Below, in pieces: positions 16,052 to 63,758 of a DNA stretch of 64,000 nt (within the stretch, counting starts at the first letter, position 1; the number at the start of each line of letters is the position of its first letter). The translations under genes were made by a program, and so were the position numbers. Under the pieces are notes generated by a model. That model worked only from the letters and a program-made list of their open reading frames with translations, was not told the origin of the DNA and ran no database searches. The stretch lies in the sequence record OR455461.1. One strand, written 5' to 3'.

Positions 16052-16650
16052 TAAGATGAGCTGTTTTTAAATACTGTTATATTTAAGAAGGTTATCGCTT
16101 TGGGCTTTCGCCTGCCATACACTAGAAGCGATAAAATACGTATATGACTACTTTCCTGTTTTCCGATACAGTTCCGTTCATTAAGTTTATCTATATTAAT
16201 TAATATATTAAATATCTCTAAATTTCTTAGGAATATATAATAATTCATCTAAAATAAAATTTTCTGTACTCATATTTTTATCTTTATTCTTTATCTCACT
16301 GTGAACACTTTCATTCTTCTTTCTTAATTCCTTAATTTCTTCTAATGTCATTTATTTTTATTCCCCTATACAAGCAACATATCTCTTACGCTATCTTATA
16401 AACATGTGTAGACTATATTAATTTTTCAATTAATATACCTAAATATAACAGTATAACTTTTTGATTATCGAGTATTTCATCGATTTGGAAATCTTTTATT
16501 TAACTCATTTGTCTACAATTGGCGTTTATTTCCTATTCGATAACTGGGAGGTCCCAGACCTTCTTCTCAATACTTTATAGGGTAAAGTAATAAGTCAGGC
16601 ATATTTATAGACTAGTTATAAGAGCGAAGAAAGATGACATTCTCTCTTCC
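16052..16650 (-). ncRNA. Candidate large structured RNA with an internal small ORF
   Basis: No long ORF, locally raised GC, many hairpins including GGC-GAAA-GCC; early-type promoter just upstream and terminator downstream. Confidence 0.5.
16208..16351 (-). CDS. 47-aa small ORF (MTLEEIKELRKKNES...PKKFRDI), missed by the ORF track
   Basis: ATG at 16351 with AGGGGA SD about 10 nt upstream; TAA at 16210-16208. Confidence 0.45.
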   Translation of the reverse strand: MTLEEIKELRKKNESVHSEIKNKDKNMSTENFILDELLYIPKKFRDI

Positions 16651-16728
16651 ATTATTATAATATAAATTTAAAAATTAAATTAAAATAATAAGTGTGCTTT
16701 AACATGTACTTATTAAAATTTTAAGAAA

Positions 16729-17718
16729 ATGAATGGTGGTGAAGAAAGATTGGCTGAAGATGATAAAAGCTTAGAAACTTCTTTTAAGGAAGAAATCAAA
16801 AAAGAAGGTAATGTAAAAGAAATAGAATCCTTTAACCCTTATAGAATGAAGGATAAAAATTCAGAAATATTTAATAAAGGTTTACCTTATATTTTCTTTA
16901 CTGCTCCTCGTTTAAATTTAGTAGATGGTAATATAAATAGAGATAGTTTCTTTTCATATCTTAAAAGTGTTAAACCAAAATTATTAGAAACTTTAAATTT
17001 TAGTAATTTAAATGCTATAAGTTCAGGTAAACCTTTTATTCCAATCCTTTCAAATAGATTTATGGGTATATCTATACCCGATACACAAACTACAATGAAA
17101 GAATTCCATGAAACATTCTACGGATATAAACAACACTTACCGGTAGGAACAGTTAATTCAGTTGCTGGTGGAGAAATTGCTGTTGACTTTGAAGAAAATA
17201 AAAATATAGACATTATACATTTAATAAAAGCTTGGAGTGAATATATTGAAGGAGTTACTAGAGGTTATATGTATCCTTCAGAAGATGCGAAAAGTAAAAG
17301 GTATATAGATTATACTAGCTCTATATATTATTTCTTATTAGATTTTGATGGAGAAACTGTTTTACATTATTCTAAATACACAGGTTGTTTCCCTATTAAT
17401 GTACCATATGATATATTCTCTCAAAATGTTGGTGAAGATGTAGATGTTCCACATGTATCAGTTAACTTTGCTTATTCGTATAAAGAAGATATGAATCCAG
17501 ATACCTTAGTTGATTTTAATACAGTATCAACAATGGGAAGTTCAGTTGCAAATGCTTCAGGTGCTTCTCCTATAAGAGCTAATATAAATGCAGTAACAAT
17601 GGGTGTTAAACTCAAATACGATGAAATGTATCCTATTAATACAGGTAGTCCTTATATTGCAATGGGATCAAGAAGTGAAGATGGATCACAAAATAAATAT
17701 AGATTAAGATTTTTATAA
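16729..17718 (+). CDS. Tail tube / tube-initiator-like protein
   Basis: YYFLLDFDGETVLHYSKYTGCFPINV..VNFAY pattern typical of the tail-tube fold; late promoter at 16701-16712. Confidence 0.55.
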   Translation: MNGGEERLAEDDKSLETSFKEEIKKEGNVKEIESFNPYRMKDKNSEIFNKGLPYIFFTAPRLNLVDGNINRDSFFSYLKSVKPKLLETLNFSNLNAISSGKPFIPILSNRFMGISIPDTQTTMKEFHETFYGYKQHLPVGTVNSVAGGEIAVDFEENKNIDIIHLIKAWSEYIEGVTRGYMYPSEDAKSKRYIDYTSSIYYFLLDFDGETVLHYSKYTGCFPINVPYDIFSQNVGEDVDVPHVSVNFAYSYKEDMNPDTLVDFNTVSTMGSSVANASGASPIRANINAVTMGVKLKYDEMYPINTGSPYIAMGSRSEDGSQNKYRLRFL

Positions 17719-17741
17719 GAAAGTGAGTTGAAATTAATAAA

Positions 17742-20732
17742 ATGGCTATAACACAGTATTTCTCTAACGAACAAGAGAAATTAGATTTTTTAAATAATGC
17801 TAAGATAGATACGGATAGTGTTATTAAAATAGGAAGTACTTCATACGATGTTAAAGAAAAATGGTTTAATATGGCTAGCAAATTCTTTGAAATTGATACT
17901 GAAAATACTCCTATTGATGATAATGAAAATGAAGAACTTATTAGTTTACTTAAAGCAGGTTTATTTGGTTATATTAATGAGATTAATTCTCATGAAGTTA
18001 AAAATGCTATATATCATAGAAACGTTTTGTATGATGAATTATTCTTAAATACAGCATCAATACCAATGTCAATTTATAACTTTGCTAAATTATATAATGT
18101 ACCTATTCAAATGGCCACACCTGCTAACTTTAAAGTAGATTTAGTAGTTAGAAAAGAAGATATATTAAAACTTCCAACTAAAGAGATTATATCTACTAAA
18201 ACTATTGATAAAGAAAAATCTCTAAAAACATACGAAGCAACTATATCTAAAAAACAAGATTTCACTATAGGTAACTTTAAATATAGCTTACCTTATGATG
18301 TTTCTATTATATTAAAACAATATCCAGTTACTAAAGATGGTAAAGAATTAATTGATTATAAAATATCAGCTAATTATAATATAGATAACAACTTATTTAA
18401 ATTCTCATCTATACTAGACAATAACGTTAAAGTAACTAAAAATATTTCTAATGGAATAGATTATTTATTCTTTAGTTTAGATCTATATCAAATTGATAGA
18501 GTTGAAAAAGAATTTAATATTACAAGTAATGATATTGCAGAAAATATTTATCTAGATAGTAGTTATGAAGGTCAATTAGCTGGATTTAATGTATTTTATG
18601 AATATATGGGTGAAAGAATTCCTATGGAAACTTATTTCAATAATACATTTACTCCAGATACGGATAATCCTTTCTGTTATTACAATTTTAAAGAGGAAAA
18701 TAAATTAGAAATATCTTTCTCTAATATTGCTAATTCATTTAGACCTAAAGCAAATAGTAGAGTTGTAATTGAAACTTTAACTACTAGAGGTGAACAGGGT
18801 AACTTTAATTATAATGATGCATTAAATGTATCATTAGAATCTGGAATTAGTACATTTGAAAAAATACCAGTTACAGTATTACCTAAAGGAAATTCTGTTA
18901 ACGGTAGAAATAAACCTACAGTAAATTCAGAAAAAAGACGTATTATTAATAAAGCTATAACTAGAGATAATATTATTACAGATTTTGATATTAAAAATTA
19001 TTTTAATGAAGTTAATGACAGTAATAATATTAATAATTCATTTATTAATTTTGTTAAGAAACGTAATGATCTATATACACGTATGTATAATGCATTCTTA
19101 TTATTAAGAGATAGTAATAATAAAGTTATGCCTACAAACACTGCACCTTATTTAGATTTCCCTAAGCAATACTTCATTGGAAATACTTCTTTAGGAAATG
19201 AAGAAAATGGTTATGTTATTCCAGAAAATAGTCTATTTAAATACGATCATGAAGAAAAAGAATATGTCCATATACCTGATGGTTTAGATGATAAAGATGA
19301 AAAAGAAAAATTTGAAAAAGATAAAGATTCTTTATATTATGTAAATCCTTTCTTAATCAAGATTAATAAGTATCCTTTCTTATCTTCCAACTATTATAAA
19401 CTTCATGTAAATGATTTATTCTCAACTGAGTATAAATACATTAATGATTTAATACCTAGTAATATAACTACAACTGATTTATATGTAGAAAAATTAAATG
19501 ATTTCAAAAATACATTAGAATCAGATACATTTAAATTTAGTGTAGAAATTGGTATGGATACATCATTACAAGAAATGAAAGATTTATTAAGTGTTAGAGT
19601 AGTTCTATTATCTCAAGAAACTGGAGAGAAGTATGGTTACTTTGAATTAAAACCAGAAGAAAATATTGAATCTGAAAATAATATTATTGATGACAGTGAT
19701 AGTAGTGTTGATAAATCTTCACTATATACAGGAATGATATCTACAAACAGATCTTTCCATGAAGGAAAACTAGCAATCACAGATTCATTATATGATTCAA
19801 AAGGTATTGTACAAGATAATGTATTTATAGATGAGAAATTTGTAGTTAAAATTGGAATTATGTATAAAGATGAAGATATGAGATATTTTAATGAATTAGA
19901 TTATTCTGATGAAATGAATTTCTTTAAAGATGCTTTTCCTAATCATGAAGATAATGTAATTAATGACTATACATTAGCTTGTTCTATGGAAACTTTTGAA
20001 GGAGTATCTATCTATAAAGATATGTCAAATGTAATGAATAGTACAATATCTATGGATGATTCTAAATGTAGAGTAGAATTAATACCAATGTTCTCATTAG
20101 GTTACTTCATGAATAATTATGAAGAAGTATATAACGTATTAGATAGTTATAAAGATATACTAGAAGATGCTATTCCTAGATTACAAAATAATACTAGTAT
20201 AGATATGAAACTGTATAATACAAAAGGTCCTTCTAATAATTATTATTTAGATACTAAATTAAATGATGATAATGTAGAAAATAAATATATCTCTAGAACT
20301 GATATATTACTAGATCTAAATATAACACTATACGCTCCAATTAATGATTTCTTAGATAAAGAAATTAAAAGATATATATCAGATTTTATTGAAGCATGTA
20401 ATGAAAATGGTATTATACCTATATCGAATTTAATAAGATTATTAGAACAAAATTTTGATATCATTAAATATATTGTATTTAATGGAATTTCAGGCAAATA
20501 TGCAGAGAAAGTTGATAATCACTATCAAAAACTTCTTAACACTAATTTAGGTTATAACGATCTAAATAAACAAGAAATTATCGAATATGTTCCAGAATAT
20601 ATAAACATTAAAAAGAATCTTAGAGATAATAAAGTAGAAATTGAAAATGAAGATAATTCAACAGGGACTACAGTTATAGATTTAGGATTAACTTATGATG
20701 ATGTTGTAAATATTACTTATTCAGTTTCTTAA
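17742..20732 (+). CDS. Baseplate wedge protein (T4 gp6-like)
   Basis: 996 aa; LNTASIPMSIYNFAKLYNV..ATPA N-terminal motif, TTRGEQGN and AITRDNIITDFD segments typical of baseplate wedge proteins. Confidence 0.65.
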   Translation: MAITQYFSNEQEKLDFLNNAKIDTDSVIKIGSTSYDVKEKWFNMASKFFEIDTENTPIDDNENEELISLLKAGLFGYINEINSHEVKNAIYHRNVLYDELFLNTASIPMSIYNFAKLYNVPIQMATPANFKVDLVVRKEDILKLPTKEIISTKTIDKEKSLKTYEATISKKQDFTIGNFKYSLPYDVSIILKQYPVTKDGKELIDYKISANYNIDNNLFKFSSILDNNVKVTKNISNGIDYLFFSLDLYQIDRVEKEFNITSNDIAENIYLDSSYEGQLAGFNVFYEYMGERIPMETYFNNTFTPDTDNPFCYYNFKEENKLEISFSNIANSFRPKANSRVVIETLTTRGEQGNFNYNDALNVSLESGISTFEKIPVTVLPKGNSVNGRNKPTVNSEKRRIINKAITRDNIITDFDIKNYFNEVNDSNNINNSFINFVKKRNDLYTRMYNAFLLLRDSNNKVMPTNTAPYLDFPKQYFIGNTSLGNEENGYVIPENSLFKYDHEEKEYVHIPDGLDDKDEKEKFEKDKDSLYYVNPFLIKINKYPFLSSNYYKLHVNDLFSTEYKYINDLIPSNITTTDLYVEKLNDFKNTLESDTFKFSVEIGMDTSLQEMKDLLSVRVVLLSQETGEKYGYFELKPEENIESENNIIDDSDSSVDKSSLYTGMISTNRSFHEGKLAITDSLYDSKGIVQDNVFIDEKFVVKIGIMYKDEDMRYFNELDYSDEMNFFKDAFPNHEDNVINDYTLACSMETFEGVSIYKDMSNVMNSTISMDDSKCRVELIPMFSLGYFMNNYEEVYNVLDSYKDILEDAIPRLQNNTSIDMKLYNTKGPSNNYYLDTKLNDDNVENKYISRTDILLDLNITLYAPINDFLDKEIKRYISDFIEACNENGIIPISNLIRLLEQNFDIIKYIVFNGISGKYAEKVDNHYQKLLNTNLGYNDLNKQEIIEYVPEYINIKKNLRDNKVEIENEDNSTGTTVIDLGLTYDDVVNITYSVS

Positions 20733-29084: not shown

Positions 29085-29519
29085 ATATGTATAAATTAAC
29101 CCTAACCTCTTCGACTAATTCAAAATCAATCTGTAGGTTAGGGTTAATGTTACTTTTACGAGAAAAGTATAAAGTTGCTTTAATAATTTTTTATATCCTA
29201 TAAAGCATAAGAAGGATTAAAGAAACCAATATATGCATGGAACATATTAGGAATCTTATAGTGATATTTTAATAGTCTAGTTTTTCTTATATTAGGAACT
29301 AAAACTAGAAAACCTAAAGTGTATTAAAGTCAGATACTTATCACAAATTAATGTAAAATAAGTCCTCTTTAATACTTCTTTTTTAATACTTTTTTACAAC
29401 TAAAGATATGCCTTAACTTTAGTTGAATCTAATAAATTAAGTTTGGCATATCACTTAATTTATATTTTATTTATAGCAGGTCTGCAGCCAAGCTATAAGG
29501 ATGATTAATCCTATAGGGT
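29085..29519 (-). ncRNA. Candidate structured RNA (about 430 nt) directly 3' of a tRNA-like gene
   Basis: Dense hairpins, a kissing-loop pair and a long-range closing helix; no ORF. Confidence 0.5.
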
Positions 29520-29604
29520 TGTTCCTAATGAGATTCGAACTCATAACCTACAGATAAATTTTAATTCATAAATCTGTACGCTCTGACCATTGAGCTATAG
29601 GAAC
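29520..29604 (-). tRNA. tRNA-like gene with an expanded anticodon loop (no assignable anticodon; Ile-UAU-like if 11 nt are ignored)
   Basis: Acceptor GUUCCUA/UAGGAAC, D arm GCUC-AAUGGUCA-GAGC, T arm AUGAG-UUCGAAU-CUCAU; anticodon stem UACAGAU/AUCUGUA closes a 16-nt loop; no encoded CCA. Confidence 0.7.
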
Positions 29605-29964
29605 ATAGAAATTTAAAAAAAAATTAAAAGAGTACATTTATCATCTATGCACTCTTTTAAGTAAATAAATATATAATAATATCTATTAATTTTTAATTAT
29701 ACGTAAGGAGGCGTATGGATTTCTATTTAAAACCATGACATATTAAAAATAGAAACAAGAGAAACCAAAGAAACATTTTTAAACCAACAACGAGTGACAA
29801 AGTAAGTTATAATAGAATTTAATCTATTATATTTTTTAGTTAAATCAAAAACTAAAAAAAATCTATAATAATTTGACGAGAATCATTATAGATTTATACT
29901 ATATAGTTAATTAATATTTTTAAATAAAATTTTTTTAATAAATAGGAATTTTAGACCAAAAAAA

Positions 29965-30034
29965 AGCTTATCCGAGGGATCGAACCCCGGACACATGATG
30001 AAAATCATTGCTCTACCAACTGAGCTAGATAAAC
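29965..30034 (-). tRNA. tRNA-like gene with a 4-nt anticodon loop
   Basis: Acceptor GUUUAUC/GAUAAGC, D arm GCUC-AGUUGGUA-GAGC, T arm CGGGG-UUCGAUC-CCUCG; anticodon arm AUGAU-UUUC-AUCAU; no encoded CCA. Confidence 0.7.
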
Positions 30035-30081
30035 TTTCTTCATTATTATAATATATGTTTATATTTCACTATATTACGCTT

Positions 30082-31401: not shown

Positions 31402-32956
31402 TTAATAAATATAATCTTCGATGTCTATTTCATTTTGTTTAATTGTCATATCATGGAAAGACTTCATAGAGCTTGTTACAATTGCTTGAGCTACCTGATT
31501 GACTAATAAACCAATATTTTCTATACCTAATTTGTAAGGGAGTTCTCCTGCACATTTACTACAGATATCTTCACTTGCACAATACATAGGACTTCTGAAG
31601 TTCAATACTTTCCCAATATGCTCATCTACATTTGAAGTAGTTAACAGTGTTAATTGACCTTTTCTTCCTGAATTATCTTCAAAATATCTATAAAGTAAAA
31701 GATTCGCATTATCTTTAGTTAAAGTTAATTTTAATGTATGTTTTGTTCTACAATCAGAACCTTGTTTATCTAATACAGTTGTTTGGAAAGCAGACATAAG
31801 TTTTTTAGCTTGATCATTTTATTATCTATATTTTATTATAGATTAGACTATATCTTATGAATTTAATCATTTCTATATTTAGTCGTTGAACAACTTAATA
31901 AAGTTGATGCTAGTTAGTTTTTAACATTCTAGCAATTAATAGAATTTATTGTGAGCATCTAATTTACCCACCTTCTTGAGTCATTTATGTTAATCTATAT
32001 TAATTTAATATAGATCAGACTATATCAAAAACTCTTTATGAGTTTAATTATATTTAGTCGTTGAACAATCATTCTGATTGATGCTGATTAAGTTTATCTC
32101 TTCTCAGCAATTAATAATTTTTCTATTATTACATTACTATAATAAAGGGCATTCATATACCTAAAGCACGTCCAGCTGAACCAGCAGTCATAATGTCTCC
32201 AAACATATATAGTTCTTCTGGATCAATTCCATCAGCTAAAGAACTCTTAGCAATACGTATTTTACTAGGATCAGCGAAGTTTTTATTTGCTCCACGTATT
32301 AATGCAGTTAACTTGAAGTTATTTCCAAAACTACCTCTTGATCCACTATCATAAATATCAAGGTCTGCTAAACCTTCTAATTCTTCTTTACTTAACTTAA
32401 TTAATTCTTTTTCAATAGCACTAATAGCATTCAATTCTTCACCAGGAGTATTTAATGCTTTACCATATTTCTCTAGTAATTCTTCTTTCTTTTGTTTAAC
32501 TTTATCAGGAGCAACCATCATTGTAGTTGTCAAACTAGAATTAATAAATCCTGCTATAGAGAAACCAAGCCATTGAAGTTTATCAATATACATATTCATA
32601 TCTTTAGTTGTAATAACATCATTAAGTAATAAACTAGATAACTCAGATTGTAGATTTCCTACACCTGATCCTCCCATATCTTTATTCATATATCCTATAA
32701 TAGGTCCTATTTTATTGTCTAATATAAATTTATTAAATATATATCTTCCAACTGTTGTTCTTTCATCTTTACTATTATAAACTAAATCTTTTTTAAGTTT
32801 AAATCTATCGCTAGGATTAAACATTGGTTGTGTATTTTGTCTAAATGCAAATAATTCTTTAAGTTTATCAAGAGTAATATCTTCTTTTTTTATACTTAAT
32901 AAAGTTGATACTTCTTTCTCAGATAAATCTTTTTTATCATAAGTCATATTAACCAA
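31402..32956 (-). CDS. rpoC: Multisubunit RNAP beta' fragment (bridge-helix region), probably virion RNAP; spliced, 3 exons, about 408 aa
   Basis: Exons 32956-32159, 31981-31966 (16 nt), 31814-31402. Joining gives RALG-TQEGG-YQAKKLMSAFQ, equivalent to the beta' ALKTANSGYLTRRL motif; SGSRGS and CxxC also present; late promoter at 33001-32990. Confidence 0.85.
31815..31965 (-). mobile_element. Group I intron, ORF-less, 151 nt
   Basis: P1 exon GUGGGU / IGS GCUCAC with U.G; P4 UGCUAG/CUAGCA; R UUCAACGACUA; S GAUAUAGUC; ends AAAAUG. Confidence 0.9.
31982..32158 (-). mobile_element. Group I intron, ORF-less, 177 nt
   Basis: 5' exon ends GGU, IGS GCC; P2 with GUAA tetraloop; P4 UGCUGA/UCAGCA; R and S motifs; ends AUAAAUG. 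Confidence 0.9.
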
Positions 32957-36200: not shown

Positions 36201-38095
36201 AGTAATAAAATTGGGGTAGTTAGACAGCTTTCATATAATTCATTAATTAAATCTACTAGAGGTTATACTGATGGCGGTAAAAAAGATGCTAATGATACAT
36301 CTCTATACACTCCATTAGAATTACTTAACCCTTATTCTAGTAGACATGCCGATAATCAAACATGGATAGTCGGCTTAAAAACTATTTAATTGCTGAAATT
36401 ACTTTAAAGTTAATCAGCATCAATCAAATTGTTCAACGACTAAATAATAGATACTAATTATATAATTAGTAATGATATAGTCTCAACTATGTATAAAGTA
36501 TATAGAAATAAGATAATGTCTCCACGTATTGGAATGACTGGTATATGAATGCCCTTTATTATAGTAATATAATAATAGAAAAATCTTTAATTGCTGAGAA
36601 AATAATAATTAAGTTAATCAGCATCAATCAAATTGTTCAACGACTAAATAAGATTATACCTAAACGGTATTTGATATAGTCTCAGCTTTAATTTATTTTA
36701 AAGAAGTTCATTAAGAACTAATACACAATAAACAAAGTGTATTAAGATAATCTGACTCAAGCCAAGCACGTAATTCCAACAAAAACTAATAGTAAACCAT
36801 TAGTTGGATCTGGTGTTGATAAATCTTTAGCTTATCAATTATCAGATACATTTGCTTTTAAAGCTAAACAAGATGGTAAAGTATTAAAAATTAACGAGAA
36901 AACTGGTTTAATGACAGTAGAATATATCAATGGTGAAAAAGATATTGTTGATATATCTGAAAAATTAGCCAAAAACTCTAACTCAGGTTTTTATCAATCT
37001 AATAAACTTGATCCACAATTTAATGTAGATGACACTTTTAATAAAGGTCAAATACTTGCTAAAAATAATAATTTCTTTGCTGGATCCGGTAAAGATAATG
37101 ATATTCAATTTACTTCAGGTAAATTATCTAAAGTATCTGTAGCTAGCTCATATGGTATTATAAATGCCTTTCATTATAGTAATGTAATGTCAAAAAATTA
37201 TTAATTGCTGAGAAATATTAAATTAATCAGCATCTCTACATTTATAGAGTTCAACGACTAAATATGATTATTCATTAATACTAATGAATTTGATATAGTC
37301 TAATCTATTATAAAAATATAATAGCTAATATAAATGACTTATGAAGATAGTTCTATTATTTCTAGTAGTATGTCTGAAGCAATGTCTACTAAAGTTACTA
37401 TGAAGAAAACAGTAAATATTCCATCAAACACAAATATTCAATATATAGTTAAAGAAGGTCAGAAAGTACGTACAGGTGATCCTTTAATGATATTTGAAAC
37501 TTCATTTGATGAAGAAGGTATTGGTTCTTTATTAGATAAAATCGGTAGTGAATTTGAACAAGATATTCAAGATATAGCTAATCGAGCTGTTAGAAGTAAA
37601 TATACAGGTAATATTAAAAAGATTAATATTTATTATAATGATGATATTGAAAATATGACTGATAGTTTAGCTAAATTAGTTAATAATTACATTAAAAAAT
37701 CAAATGATAAATATAAAGAATATAAATCTGGAGTTAAAAATAATAAAGAAACTTTACCTGGTATTGATGTAGATATTGCAGCTGTAGAGAAAATTAATAC
37801 AGAGAAAATTAAAGGAGAAAAAGTTGACGGAGTTCTTATTGAAATCTTCACTGAATATGAAGATGATATGAGTGTTGGAGATAAAATTAGTTTCTACGGA
37901 GCTTGTAAAACTGTAGTTGCTGATGTAACTCCTCCAAATGAATCACCTTATTCTGAATATAGATCTGATGAAGAAGTTGAAGCTGTATTCTCTCCATTAA
38001 GTATTGTCTCTCGTATGACAGTTGATATTTATATGATGTTATTCACAAATAAAGCTTTAATAGAATTAAAACGTAAAGTAAAAGATATGGTATAA
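33273..38095 (+). CDS. rpoB: Multisubunit RNAP beta subunit, probably virion RNAP; spliced, 4 exons, 1421 aa
   Basis: Exons 33273-36353, 36519-36542 (24 nt), 36755-37156, 37337-38095. Joining restores RHAD-SPRIGMTG-TQAKHVIP (cf. DANRALMGSNMQRQAVP) and SYG-TYEDS (cf. GYNFEDS); VGDK and FSPLSIVSRMT motifs follow. Confidence 0.9.
36354..36518 (+). mobile_element. Group I intron, ORF-less, 165 nt
   Basis: P1 exon GCCGAU / IGS GUCGGC with U.G; AAUUGCUGA, AAUCAGCA, GUUCAACGACUA, GAUAUAGUC; terminal G at 36518. Confidence 0.92.
36543..36754 (+). mobile_element. Group I intron, ORF-less, 212 nt
   Basis: 5' exon ends GGU, IGS GCC; P2 GUAA tetraloop; same core; three P9 hairpins; terminal G at 36754. 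Confidence 0.9.
37157..37336 (+). mobile_element. Group I intron, ORF-less, 180 nt
   Basis: 5' exon ends GGU, IGS GCC; P2 GUAA tetraloop; same core; ends AUAAAUG. The ATG starting the ORF-track 37334 call is the intron 3' end. Confidence 0.9.
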
Positions 38096-60733: not shown

Positions 60734-61519
60734 TTATATATTATAAATCAAAAAATCTAAATTTGCTATAAATTTATCTTGAGAAATTGAAAATTTTAGT
60801 AAGATAAATTCACTATATACATCTGTTTCCGGAGCAAAGATATCTACATGAACTTCAGGACAAACAATATTTCCTTTTGTAGTTTTATATTTTAATCCTA
60901 ATAAATATTTCTTTGAAGTTCTGAAATCAATTAAATAATCATCTTCATCATAAATATAATACGGTTCTCTTACAAACATTTCATTTTCAGTAAATACACA
61001 TTTAAAGAATTCAGAAGGTTTACATTCTTTAATATATAATAAAGATTTTTCATCTAAATTAAAAGAATAGAAAGGATCTAATTCTTTAAGAAATTTAATA
61101 GCATCTTCTGTATAATTATATTCTTCATTGATATTCTCTTCATTATGATAATCTTTATCATCAATAATTGTTTCTAAATCCGATTCTCTAGTAAACTTAA
61201 TACCTTTATTATCTTCATCATTAAAGAATTCTACTTTAATAATTTTATCAGCTTTATTAGTTCTAACTTGTATAAAATCTTCTACATTAAAACTACAATA
61301 CTCAATTGGAAGAAGATAATCATAAATTGGATTATCTTCTTTAATTTGTACATTAACATTATTAGGTATAGTTTCTAAATTAGAACCATTAGTAAATACA
61401 TTATTTTTGAAATCTATCAATTTACTTCCATTTTCAATATTATTAAATAATTTAGAAATTTCTTCAAAGGTCATGACTAATTTATTTACTATTTTACTTT
61501 CTTCAATTAAAATACTCAA
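60734..61519 (-). CDS. Hypothetical protein
   Basis: 261 aa, TTG start with AAGGAG SD, coupled to the DNA polymerase gene. Confidence 0.65.
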   Translation of the reverse strand: MSILIEESKIVNKLVMTFEEISKLFNNIENGSKLIDFKNNVFTNGSNLETIPNNVNVQIKEDNPIYDYLLPIEYCSFNVEDFIQVRTNKADKIIKVEFFNDEDNKGIKFTRESDLETIIDDKDYHNEENINEEYNYTEDAIKFLKELDPFYSFNLDEKSLLYIKECKPSEFFKCVFTENEMFVREPYYIYDEDDYLIDFRTSKKYLLGLKYKTTKGNIVCPEVHVDIFAPETDVYSEFILLKFSISQDKFIANLDFLIYNI

Positions 61520-61522
61520 AGG

Positions 61523-63392
61523 TTAAGCTCCTTTACTTTTTATTTTATCAGATACTTTCTTAGCTGCAACATTCAATGGAGGTAAACCATGAAATTCTTG
61601 AGCAAAGGATACACTATCTTGACTGTTAAATTTACTAATAAATTCAGTATTAAAGTCATAATTTAATTTGTCTTCTTCATACTTAGGAACTGTCATTGTA
61701 GATTTATCTCGTATTTGAATTTTACCTATGTGTCCTTCAGGAGTTATATTAAATCCTCTAATAATTGAAGGATATAGTGAACTCAAGTCAAAGTCACATA
61801 CATTACTAAATATTCTATTAGATCTAATATCTTTACCTTTAACTAAAATATCTCCCATACGTTCTATTAAAGTCATATTAGCTACAAATCCACCACGTAT
61901 TTTATCTGCATTTGGATCAGATAGTATTTTAGAGTGATTATTACTTAATACAAATCCTTGATTTTCAAAGAAGACAGAACTACGATTTCTTAAACAAATA
62001 GTTTTCTTAAGTGCTTTACTTGGTCTAGTTCTAGTCATATCTACAATAGAGAATAGTAAATCAAACATATTAGTGTTCTTCTCTATTAAAGCAGTTAATA
62101 TGGTATCTTTAATATTATAAAGAATGAATGTGTAATAATCTCTAAAATGTAAATCAGAGATAGAGCCTTCATATACATCCTTTTTAATTCCAGTTTCTTT
62201 TTCACCAACATCATTTAACTTAACTGATTCCATTACACCGTTCGGTTTATTCACATTTGCATATAAAGCTAATTGGTCAATCCAGTTAGTGTATGAGTTA
62301 GTTTCGAATGTAGATGATCTATTAGCTGCATCTGTAGCATTCTTATCTAATCTATAATAAGCTTTTTTATCTTGTAAATCTTTAGAACAGAAATAATCTG
62401 CTGGATCTTCTCCATTAACTTTAATTCTTTCAAATATAGTTGCAAAGTCAAAATCTAGATTCCATGCGGTACATATATCAGGCTTACTAATTTCATTAAT
62501 ATAGTATAAGAATGATTTAATAATTTCCATTTCAGTATCTAATTCATATATTTCAAATTCTAAACCTAAATCTTCTCCAATCTCACTATCTTTATTATTA
62601 TAAATATTATTTAGATCTTCCATTAATTTAGTTTTATCTGTCATAACTTCATTATAATTATCCGTATCATATTTTAATGCAAATGTTAAACATTTACGTT
62701 TACTCCAATCAACTACAGTTATAATATTAATTTCAGCCATTCCTGGTTCAGGGACATTTATATTAACTTCATACAATTGTATAAAGATTAGACTATATCT
62801 TATCAATATCAGTGATAATTATATTTAGTCGTTGAACACAATTAAATGTGATGCTGATTGTCTTTAAACTTTTCAGCAATTAATAATTTTTTAATTGAGC
62901 TACCTAAAACCCAATTACATTTGATCCATCTACCTCTATATCAAATAGACATATATCAATTCCAACTTTACTATCTAAGTTTTGTTTGATATATTCATTG
63001 ATATTATAATCTTCAATATTAATATCAGATCCATGAACATTATTCATTAAATGAAAATCTTTTAATTTTCTAAACTCTTCATAATTACCTGAAGATAATA
63101 TTCTATCGTATTCTGATTTATCTTGAGCATTACCTGCTTCTCTAACTATAGATTTAATAACATCTTTATGTTTACAATGTACAGTTCTAACTTTCTCTTT
63201 TGCCATAGAACCTACAACTTGACCAGGTGGTAACCAATATTCATCTTTAGTAACATAATAGTGCATCATTGGATCCACTATTTCCATATGTTTTTTAGTT
63301 CCATCTTCTTCTTTAACAACCATTACTACTTTTTCTTTTTTATTAGATGTTTCTTTTTTATTCAAATATGTTGATTTTATAAAACGACCCAT
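61523..63392 (-). CDS. polB: Family B DNA polymerase, N-terminal part (3'-5' exonuclease plus motif A); spliced, 2 exons, 571 aa
   Basis: Exons 63392-62909 and 62754-61523 join as DIEVDGSNVIG-F-PEPGMAE (ExoI). AWNLDFD (ExoII), YNIKDT (ExoIII) and DFDLSSLYPSII (motif A) are present; motifs B/C are absent, so the polymerase is split. Confidence 0.88.
62755..62908 (-). mobile_element. Group I intron, ORF-less, 154 nt
   Basis: P1 exon AAUUGGGU / IGS GCUCAAUU (8 bp, U.G); same P4/R/S core; ends AUAAAUG. Confidence 0.92.
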
Positions 63393-63557
63393 AACTAAAA
63401 ATTCCTCCTAATTCAAGTTATTTCATAATTGCTAGTTATTATAATTTTGTAAAAAATTAAAAATATAATGCCAAACAACTTTATTAAAGTTGTTTGGCGT
63501 GTTTTATATTTATTTAGTCCAAATAAAACCTGTTTCTTTAGTAGTTTTTGATTCTTT

Positions 63558-63758
63558 TTAAATTTTCCCTTTTGATTTTAATTCTAAGTAATAATCATTT
63601 AACTTTTCACAAATATTTAAAGATAATCCACCTATTTCTCTTTTACCATTCTTAAGTTTAGATATTTGTGATTGATCTACTTTTGTTTCTTTTGCAATTC
63701 TACTTCCATTTATATTACTTTTAAGTAATTTTTCTATATTATTTCTCATCTCACTCAT
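63558..63758 (-). CDS. XRE/Cro-type HTH protein (66 aa; true start probably ATG 63758)
   Basis: GSRIAKETKVDQSQISKLKNGKR HTH; GGAG SD before 63758. Confidence 0.75.
   Translation of the reverse strand: MSEMRNNIEKLLKSNINGSRIAKETKVDQSQISKLKNGKREIGGLSLNICEKLNDYYLELKSKGKI

Follow-up and report, generated by a model that had tools for sequence, protein, structure and literature searches.

A minimal group I intron in the exonuclease-subunit gene of the split family-B DNA polymerase of Staphylococcus phage AH12

The window analysed here comprises the last 64 kb of the genome record of Staphylococcus phage AH12 (OR455461.1, 264,661 bp; 100% identity; window positions equal record positions minus 200,661), an AR9/PBS1-like jumbo phage that infects S. 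aureus. The element in question is a 154-nucleotide (nt) segment that separates two open reading frames (ORFs) of a family-B DNA polymerase gene and that an original prediction, made from the letters of the sequence, took for a group I intron (Table 1). GenBank lists the two pieces of the AH12 gene as separate coding sequences (CDSs), each a 'hypothetical protein', with ends and starts within the intron. The upstream ORF stops at a TAG (62906-62904), the downstream ORF begins at a TTG (62806) and the GenBank CDS begins at window position 62776; since all three positions are intronic, these starts and stops are artefacts of intron sequence, as had been proposed. The second frame opens inside the gap, and its TAA lies at 61523-61525. 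The region upstream of exon 1 indicates a gene with its own transcription start, given its terminator-like hairpin, AT-rich promoter region and ribosome-binding site; a terminator and ribosome-binding site are annotated at the same place in the relatives MarsHill and Machias.

Table 1. Features of the exonuclease-subunit locus of AH12 (window positions; a slash in the text marks a splice junction)
Feature	Position	Strand	Details
Upstream region	63393-63505	minus	terminator-like hairpin GCCAAACAAC...GTTGTTTGGC and, after it, a run of T; AT-rich promoter region; ribosome-binding site AGGAGG
Exon 1 of the DNA polymerase N-terminal (exonuclease + partial palm) subunit gene	63392-62909	minus	161 codons plus the T of Phe162; ATG at 63392; ExoI (FDIEVD)
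P1 hairpin	62885-62916	minus	exon strand AAUUGGGU (62916-62909), loop UUUAGGUA, internal guide GCUCAAUU (62900-62893)
Group I intron, ORF-less, 154 nt	62908-62755	minus	begins TTTAGGTAGCTCAATT, finishes ATATAAATG
Exon 2	62754-61523	minus	TC of Phe162, 408 further codons and stop; ExoII/ExoIII and motif A DFDLSSLYPSII

Exon 1 reads ...FDIEVDGSNVIG and then GGG T, ending at 62909. Excision of the intron gives ATTGGGT/TCCCTGAA, which encodes I-G-F-P-E-P; the Phe codon is split T/TC and the frame is restored. The codon count is 161, one Phe, 408 and the stop, or 571 codons, and the predicted protein sequence spanning the junction is ...NVIGFPEPGMAEINIITVVDWSK. The original placement of the intron in the ExoI motif is loose: between the DIE triad of DIEVD and the insertion point there are 8 codons, and the intron interrupts the conserved GFP segment next to the motif.

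The exon boundaries are fixed by intron-free orthologs (protein searches were run exon by exon, with the exons kept separate). In the uninterrupted SA1 protein (572 amino acids), residues 1-161 align to AH12 exon 1 and residues 163-566 to exon 2, and the sole residue between the two alignments, residue 162, is the Phe split by the intron; the interval 62908-62755 and its exact junction are thereby confirmed. Residues 1-161 of the MarsHill protein (573 amino acids), also encoded by an uninterrupted gene, likewise align to exon 1, and a comparison of the DNA puts the difference between the MarsHill and AH12 genes at this site at 148 nt and a two-codon indel. PHROG 3011 ('DNA polymerase') matches the exons colinearly, exon 1 at profile positions 21-154 and exon 2 at 163-562 (E 1e-47). 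Both exons are intact, with no frame damage and 82-85% protein identity to the orthologs. Two other explanations of the interrupted frame were rejected: an intein, because the insert breaks the exon frame (TAG within 3 codons of the exon) and has an RNA core, and a translational bypass or frameshift, because the gap is explained by a group I core with covariation.

The intron is built of helices P1, P3, P4, a 3-bp P5, P6, P7, P8 and P9 and ends in G; P2 and peripheral domains are absent. Run on a 701-nt stretch, the Rfam model RF00028 aligned the whole element (25.1 bits, E 3e-4) in blocks corresponding to P1, P3, the P4 strands AAUUGCUG and UCAGC, P6, the P7 strand UUCAACGACUAAAU, the J8/7-P7' block AGAUAUAGUCUAAUC and P9. 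The single-sequence minimum free energy (MFE) structure computed by RNAfold includes P1 (10 bp), P4, the 3-bp P5, P6, P7, P8 and P9, with a modest MFE z-score of -2.8 at a GC content of 22%. The 3' end of the intron, ...AUAUAAAUG at 62755, supplies the terminal G (omega-G), and most paralogs have a G at the aligned position.

P1 consists of 8 bp with a U•G wobble at the 5' splice site, a helix that RNAfold extends to 10 bp. At exon position -6, the U-A pair of AH12 is replaced by C-G in the orthologous introns of LY01 and PALS_2, a compensatory change that, together with the core motifs, the P3/P7 pseudoknot, the covariation and the terminal G, bears out the assignment to group I. The description of this P1 as the best of the set needs qualifying: its uninterrupted run of pairs is longer than that of the other five introns of the window, but the predicted 5' hairpin of intron E is more stable than that of the polymerase intron (-11.1 vs -6.9 kcal/mol).

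The other five window introns, paralogs of the polymerase intron, sit in RNA polymerase (RNAP) genes, and all six have invariant core strands in common. A covariance model, R1, was built from the six (P3, which forms a pseudoknot with P7, stayed outside the model), and its search of the AH12 genome returned 29 full copies (E < 1e-11), of which the polymerase intron is the top match (131 bits). The predicted membership in the same family as the RNAP introns is upheld. Across the 29 copies, 96.4% of cells are in standard pairs, compared with 26-48% in controls in which pairing partners were slid by 1-3 columns, and 20 of the 31 pairs show changes on both sides. P3 is paired in 95% of cells, and 5 of its 6 pairs have changed on both sides, even though it is absent from the search model; P7 and most of P4 are invariant. 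Members of the AH12 family are about 140-180 nt long, and by blastn the family is confined to six Staphylococcus jumbo-phage records, with 10-34 places in each. The stated distance of about 25 kb from the RNAP cluster applies to the intron-bearing cluster at 31.8-37.3 kb; an RNAP beta' gene, however, lies 3.4 kb downstream of the polymerase gene.

Further variation was observed within the family. A 5' module of two hairpins, GGUAU...AUGCC followed by UUAUUAUAGUAAUGUAAUAAU, is common to introns B, C and F (32123-32170, 37145-37191 and 36530-36577) and missing from the polymerase intron and intron D; the family thus has forms with and without a P2-like hairpin. Weaker or partial model matches at L013:18275-18380 (without P4-P6), L013:19684-19784 (5' half only) and L014:17496-17649 (long insert in P6) may be members that have decayed or been rearranged.

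The same insertion site, after ...TTGGGT in the Phe codon of G-F-P, is occupied in several related phages and empty in others. LY01 has an ORF-less mini-intron (exons about 165 nt apart), Machias and PB50 have an intron with an HNH ORF (about 790 nt between exons in both), PALS_2 has one with about 1060 nt between exons, and the site is empty in MarsHill and SA1. The introns of Machias, PB50 and PALS_2 share the guide GCUCAAUU with that of AH12 (apart from the PALS_2 change given above), and their 5' ~95 nt and 3' ~60 nt are about 94-100% identical to it; the Machias and AH12 introns are collinear save for a ~605-nt insertion just after the P3' strand, in P8, that carries the HNH ORF. Machias, PB50 and PALS_2 thus differ from AH12 in having a ~585-nt HNH homing-endonuclease ORF in the P8 region, where AH12 has only a 4-5-bp hairpin. 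In the Machias record (MW349128.1) the gene, CPT_Machias_137, is annotated as a three-exon join encoding a 'DNA polymerase exonuclease domain protein', and it contains a second, endonuclease-bearing intron downstream (at AH12 gene position ~930) that AH12 lacks. The LY01 intron resembles that of AH12 in its small size and core (R1 78.7 bits) and differs in the compensatory C-G at position -6; the LY01 gene has a second mini-intron, and its record is unannotated.

Such a second mini-intron is found further down the exonuclease-subunit gene of both LY01 (L019:1953-2088) and PB50 (L018:1966-2085), on the minus strand, and is missing from AH12. In addition, an indoor-metagenome DNA run (X1) contains several strains, among them an AH12-like intron-bearing contig and a MarsHill-like intron-free allele, ...SQVTGFPDPEKAE... 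(62685-63600, 62738-62926). Filled and empty sites therefore coexist in one environment, a setting in which homing can act.

A candidate for the spliced message was found in an RNA-seq metatranscriptome from a tick metagenome (X5), in which about half of the words of the stretch are present. Both exons are represented among the X5 contigs (62614-63089), with 98.5-100% identity, but no contig falls on the intron. One contig of 322 nt passes from 62754 directly into 14 letters and then continues from 62923 onward; on the coding strand these letters are GCAAACAGTTGGGT, exactly the exon-1 end of Machias and PB50. The contig therefore reads ...GTTGGGT/TCCCTGAA..., the ligated junction predicted for a Machias-like strain. 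Since all three sequenced members of the Machias-like sub-clade bear an intron at this site, the contig is more likely to derive from spliced mRNA. Its single-nucleotide polymorphisms are a mixture with respect to Machias, PB50, MarsHill and LY01 and indicate a distinct, unsequenced strain, about 98.5% identical to AH12. Run X6, whose RNA nature is doubtful, yielded only small pieces away from the junction, and run X9 yielded nothing. The X5 library might also provide evidence of splicing for the other members of the intron family. The presence of a close AH12 relative in a tick metagenome is also an unexpected habitat record for a Staphylococcus jumbo phage.

The interrupted gene encodes one part of a polymerase that is split across two genes. 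The expected family-B order is found in its N-terminal part, with the DIE triad in exon 1 and ExoII, ExoIII and motif A in exon 2; exon 2 aligns to RB69/T4 gp43 over residues 190-339 (ExoII-ExoIII) and 404-436 (motif A, FDLSSLYPSII). The spliced 571-residue product stops after motif A, as had been noted: the reading frame ends about 70 residues further on, as it does in MarsHill and SA1, and motifs B (KxxxNSxYG) and C (DTD) are not found in the same polypeptide as motif A. PF00136 reaches 14.9 bits on the first gene (positions 59-88), below its cut-off of 23 bits. A 261-aa ORF (60734-61519, minus strand) starts 4 nt past the stop of the polymerase subunit, with its ribosome-binding site within the end of the polymerase gene. 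Its position is kept in all relatives, it has no Pfam or PHROG match, and its product could be a polymerase accessory protein. Neither this protein nor the 824-aa protein on the other flank contains a Pfam family, and the latter is the portal vertex protein in relatives; neither is thus the partner carrying motifs B and C.

In the AH12 genome PF00136 matches a single other place (record 18096-18410, minus strand; 39.9 bits), which identified the partner gene at record 16337-18626 on the minus strand, with motif B KILANSYYGA, and so confirmed the predicted split. On PHROG 262 the two proteins abut, the first covering profile positions 139-438 and the second starting at 438. On a circular reading of the permuted genome, about 17 kb separate the two genes across the record ends. 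The partner gene has two introns of the same family (model matches 17442-17585 and 17038-17175), the first of which lies between the catalytic aspartates of motif C, ...LTID/TDSNF...; for this copy the model overshoots the real 3' splice site by 4 nt. Its three exons are listed in the AH12 record as separate hypothetical proteins. In relatives the gene is annotated as 'DNA polymerase catalytic subunit', with three exons in Machias, two in MarsHill and no interruption in SA1, and each of the ten Staphylococcus jumbo-phage records matched has an ortholog, as do AR9, PBS1, BpSp and phiR1-37.

The polymerase genes of SA1 are ORF175 and ORF198, which are 23 CDSs apart, as fits their numbering; ORF198 is the ortholog of the AH12 exonuclease-subunit gene. 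Both are reported as middle genes (PMC9414953), and the corresponding split pair of AR9, gp132 and gp152, is described as 'continuously expressed' (PMC5312081). The idea that the intron had reached an early gene is not supported by these data, ORF198 being middle and gp132 continuously expressed. AR9, PBS1, BpSp and phiR1-37 have the same arrangement as AH12, a DnaQ-like exonuclease with a partial catalytic domain in one gene and the catalytic subunit in a distant one. The AR9 proteins gp132 and gp152 are 37% and 36.5% identical to those of AH12, respectively; the AH12 genes differ in being interrupted, the first by one intron and the second by two. The DNA polymerase is described as intact in AR9 and disrupted by introns in MarsHill-like phages (Korn et al., bioRxiv 10.1101/2020.12.14.422802).

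From the fold and the junction we infer the following course of splicing. In the pre-mRNA the last 8 exon bases would pair with the internal guide to form P1, with the U•G at the cleavage site, and the P3-P9 core would provide the guanosine-binding catalytic centre. An external guanosine would cut after ...AUUGGGU, and the freed exon end would attack after the terminal G of the intron. Ligation, AUUGGGU/UCCCUGAA, would then restore Phe162 and the 571-residue frame. The resulting N-terminal subunit (3'-5' exonuclease and motif A) is predicted to assemble with the separate catalytic subunit (motifs B and C) into the replicative polymerase. As for its origin, the AH12 intron is the endonuclease-free form of the intron that, in Machias, PB50 and PALS_2, carries an HNH gene in its P8 region.

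The main reading, in which 62908-62755 is a group I intron of minimal size that lacks an ORF and interrupts the N-terminal subunit gene of AH12's two-gene family-B polymerase, has in our estimate a probability of about 93%. Several observations weigh against it. The RF00028 score of 25.1 bits falls short of the Rfam gathering score of 50 bits, a shortfall explained by missing peripheral helices and not by the core, and whole-window Rfam scans, by gathering threshold or by E-value, did not return the intron. The X5 contig comes from another strain than AH12 and could represent an intron-free allele or carried-over DNA, given that intron-free DNA alleles exist (MarsHill, SA1 and the X1 variant); the contig is thus supportive and not proof. 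To our knowledge, moreover, an intron of 154 nt with a 3-bp P5 and no P2 is smaller than the group I introns proven to self-splice (a literature search for the smallest group I intron found no usable size record), and with these features autonomous catalysis is not assured.

It is a tentative proposal, with somewhat less than an even chance of being right, that the intron and its ~29 paralogs are autonomous ribozymes, the smallest natural self-splicing group I introns, possibly spreading without an endonuclease of their own, with assistance from HNH genes that enter and leave P8. The competing view, that a group I-derived intron depends on a phage or host protein cofactor (maturase-like or a chaperone) for folding or reaction in vivo, would account for its very small size, its 3-bp P5, the lack of P2 or peripheral stabilising domains, the low GC content and modest z-score, and the sub-threshold Rfam score. 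We consider it rather unlikely: the catalytic-core strands are invariant in 29 copies and compensatory changes preserve the helices, which is what selection on the RNA's own fold should produce; no cofactor candidate was identified; and the ORF-less introns of ~206 nt in Jug phages are supported by metatranscriptome reads (PMC12880540).

Explanations that dispense with splicing fare worse. Translation of the two ORFs apart, into a 162-residue ExoI fragment and a protein of about 417-427 residues, would agree with the two CDSs annotated in GenBank and with a phage group that tolerates polymerases split into separate genes. However, the start of the downstream ORF (the TTG or another internal codon) lies inside the conserved ribozyme core, the insert has a full group I architecture with covariation, the intron-free orthologs are in frame across the site and the joined form occurs in an RNA-library contig; separate translation is very improbable and was rejected as an explanation of the gene. 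The slightest chance of all is given to a decayed intron remnant in a pseudogene, with replication by another polymerase. The loss of the HNH gene found in the counterparts in Machias, PB50 and PALS_2 would be compatible with decay, but AH12 is a propagated isolate, the exons are intact and well conserved, the intron is the best-scoring member of the R1 model, and PF00136 finds no family-B polymerase gene in the genome beyond the partner.

Elsewhere in the window, two tRNA-like genes (29517-29605 and 29964-30035, minus strand) have abnormal anticodon loops, one of which contains a 14-nt insertion while its counterpart is shortened; ARAGORN assigned an anticodon to neither.

The AH12 intron is a missed annotation: it adds a new, endonuclease-free member to an intron lineage already known, and the split polymerase that it interrupts is known as well. 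Since earlier work has described introns in these genes, the division of the polymerase and swarms of small introns in jumbo phages, the general picture is unchanged. In particular, Korn et al. predicted from protein alignments that introns interrupt 'DNA polymerase subunits', RNAP subunits and other genes of MarsHill, Madawaska and Machias (bioRxiv 10.1101/2020.12.14.422802). The gene models of AH12 are corrected to a two-exon gene for the 571-residue exonuclease subunit and a three-exon gene for the catalytic subunit, and the records of LY01 and PALS_2, which show the exonuclease-subunit gene in separate pieces, need the same correction. The locus is a further case of introns beside catalytic residues of essential replication genes, and, with introns that do and do not carry an endonuclease at a single site, it supplies a clean natural pair. 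Should the 154-nt group I core splice unaided, it would make a minimal ribozyme of practical use.

Classical phage group I introns, such as those of T4 td, nrdB and sunY, the SPO1 DNA polymerase gene and Twort/K, lie in conserved catalytic regions of genes for nucleotide metabolism and replication, are often associated with HNH or GIY-YIG homing endonucleases, and are typically 250-1000 nt long, with P2, P7.1/7.2 or P9 extensions and 1-5 copies per genome. The AH12 introns resemble them in their J8/7-P7 sequence, AGAUAUAGUC, but are bare cores of about 150 nt present in about 29 copies per genome. The usual 'minimal' model of self-splicing is the Azoarcus pre-tRNA-Ile intron, which is GC-rich and about 205 nt long and retains P2 and tetraloop-receptor contacts. 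It shares with the AH12 intron a compact core without large peripheral domains, whereas the latter is about 50 nt shorter, has 22% GC and lacks P2. A similar genomic habit is found in the Jug gut jumbo phages, whose small ORF-less group I introns (about 206 nt, 18.5 per genome on average) interrupt essential genes, including polymerase genes, and are supported by metatranscriptome reads in about half of the cases (PMC12880540). Both groups have many small ORF-less group I introns per jumbo-phage genome; they differ in host phylum and phage lineage, and the AH12 family is the shorter one and sub-threshold in Rfam.

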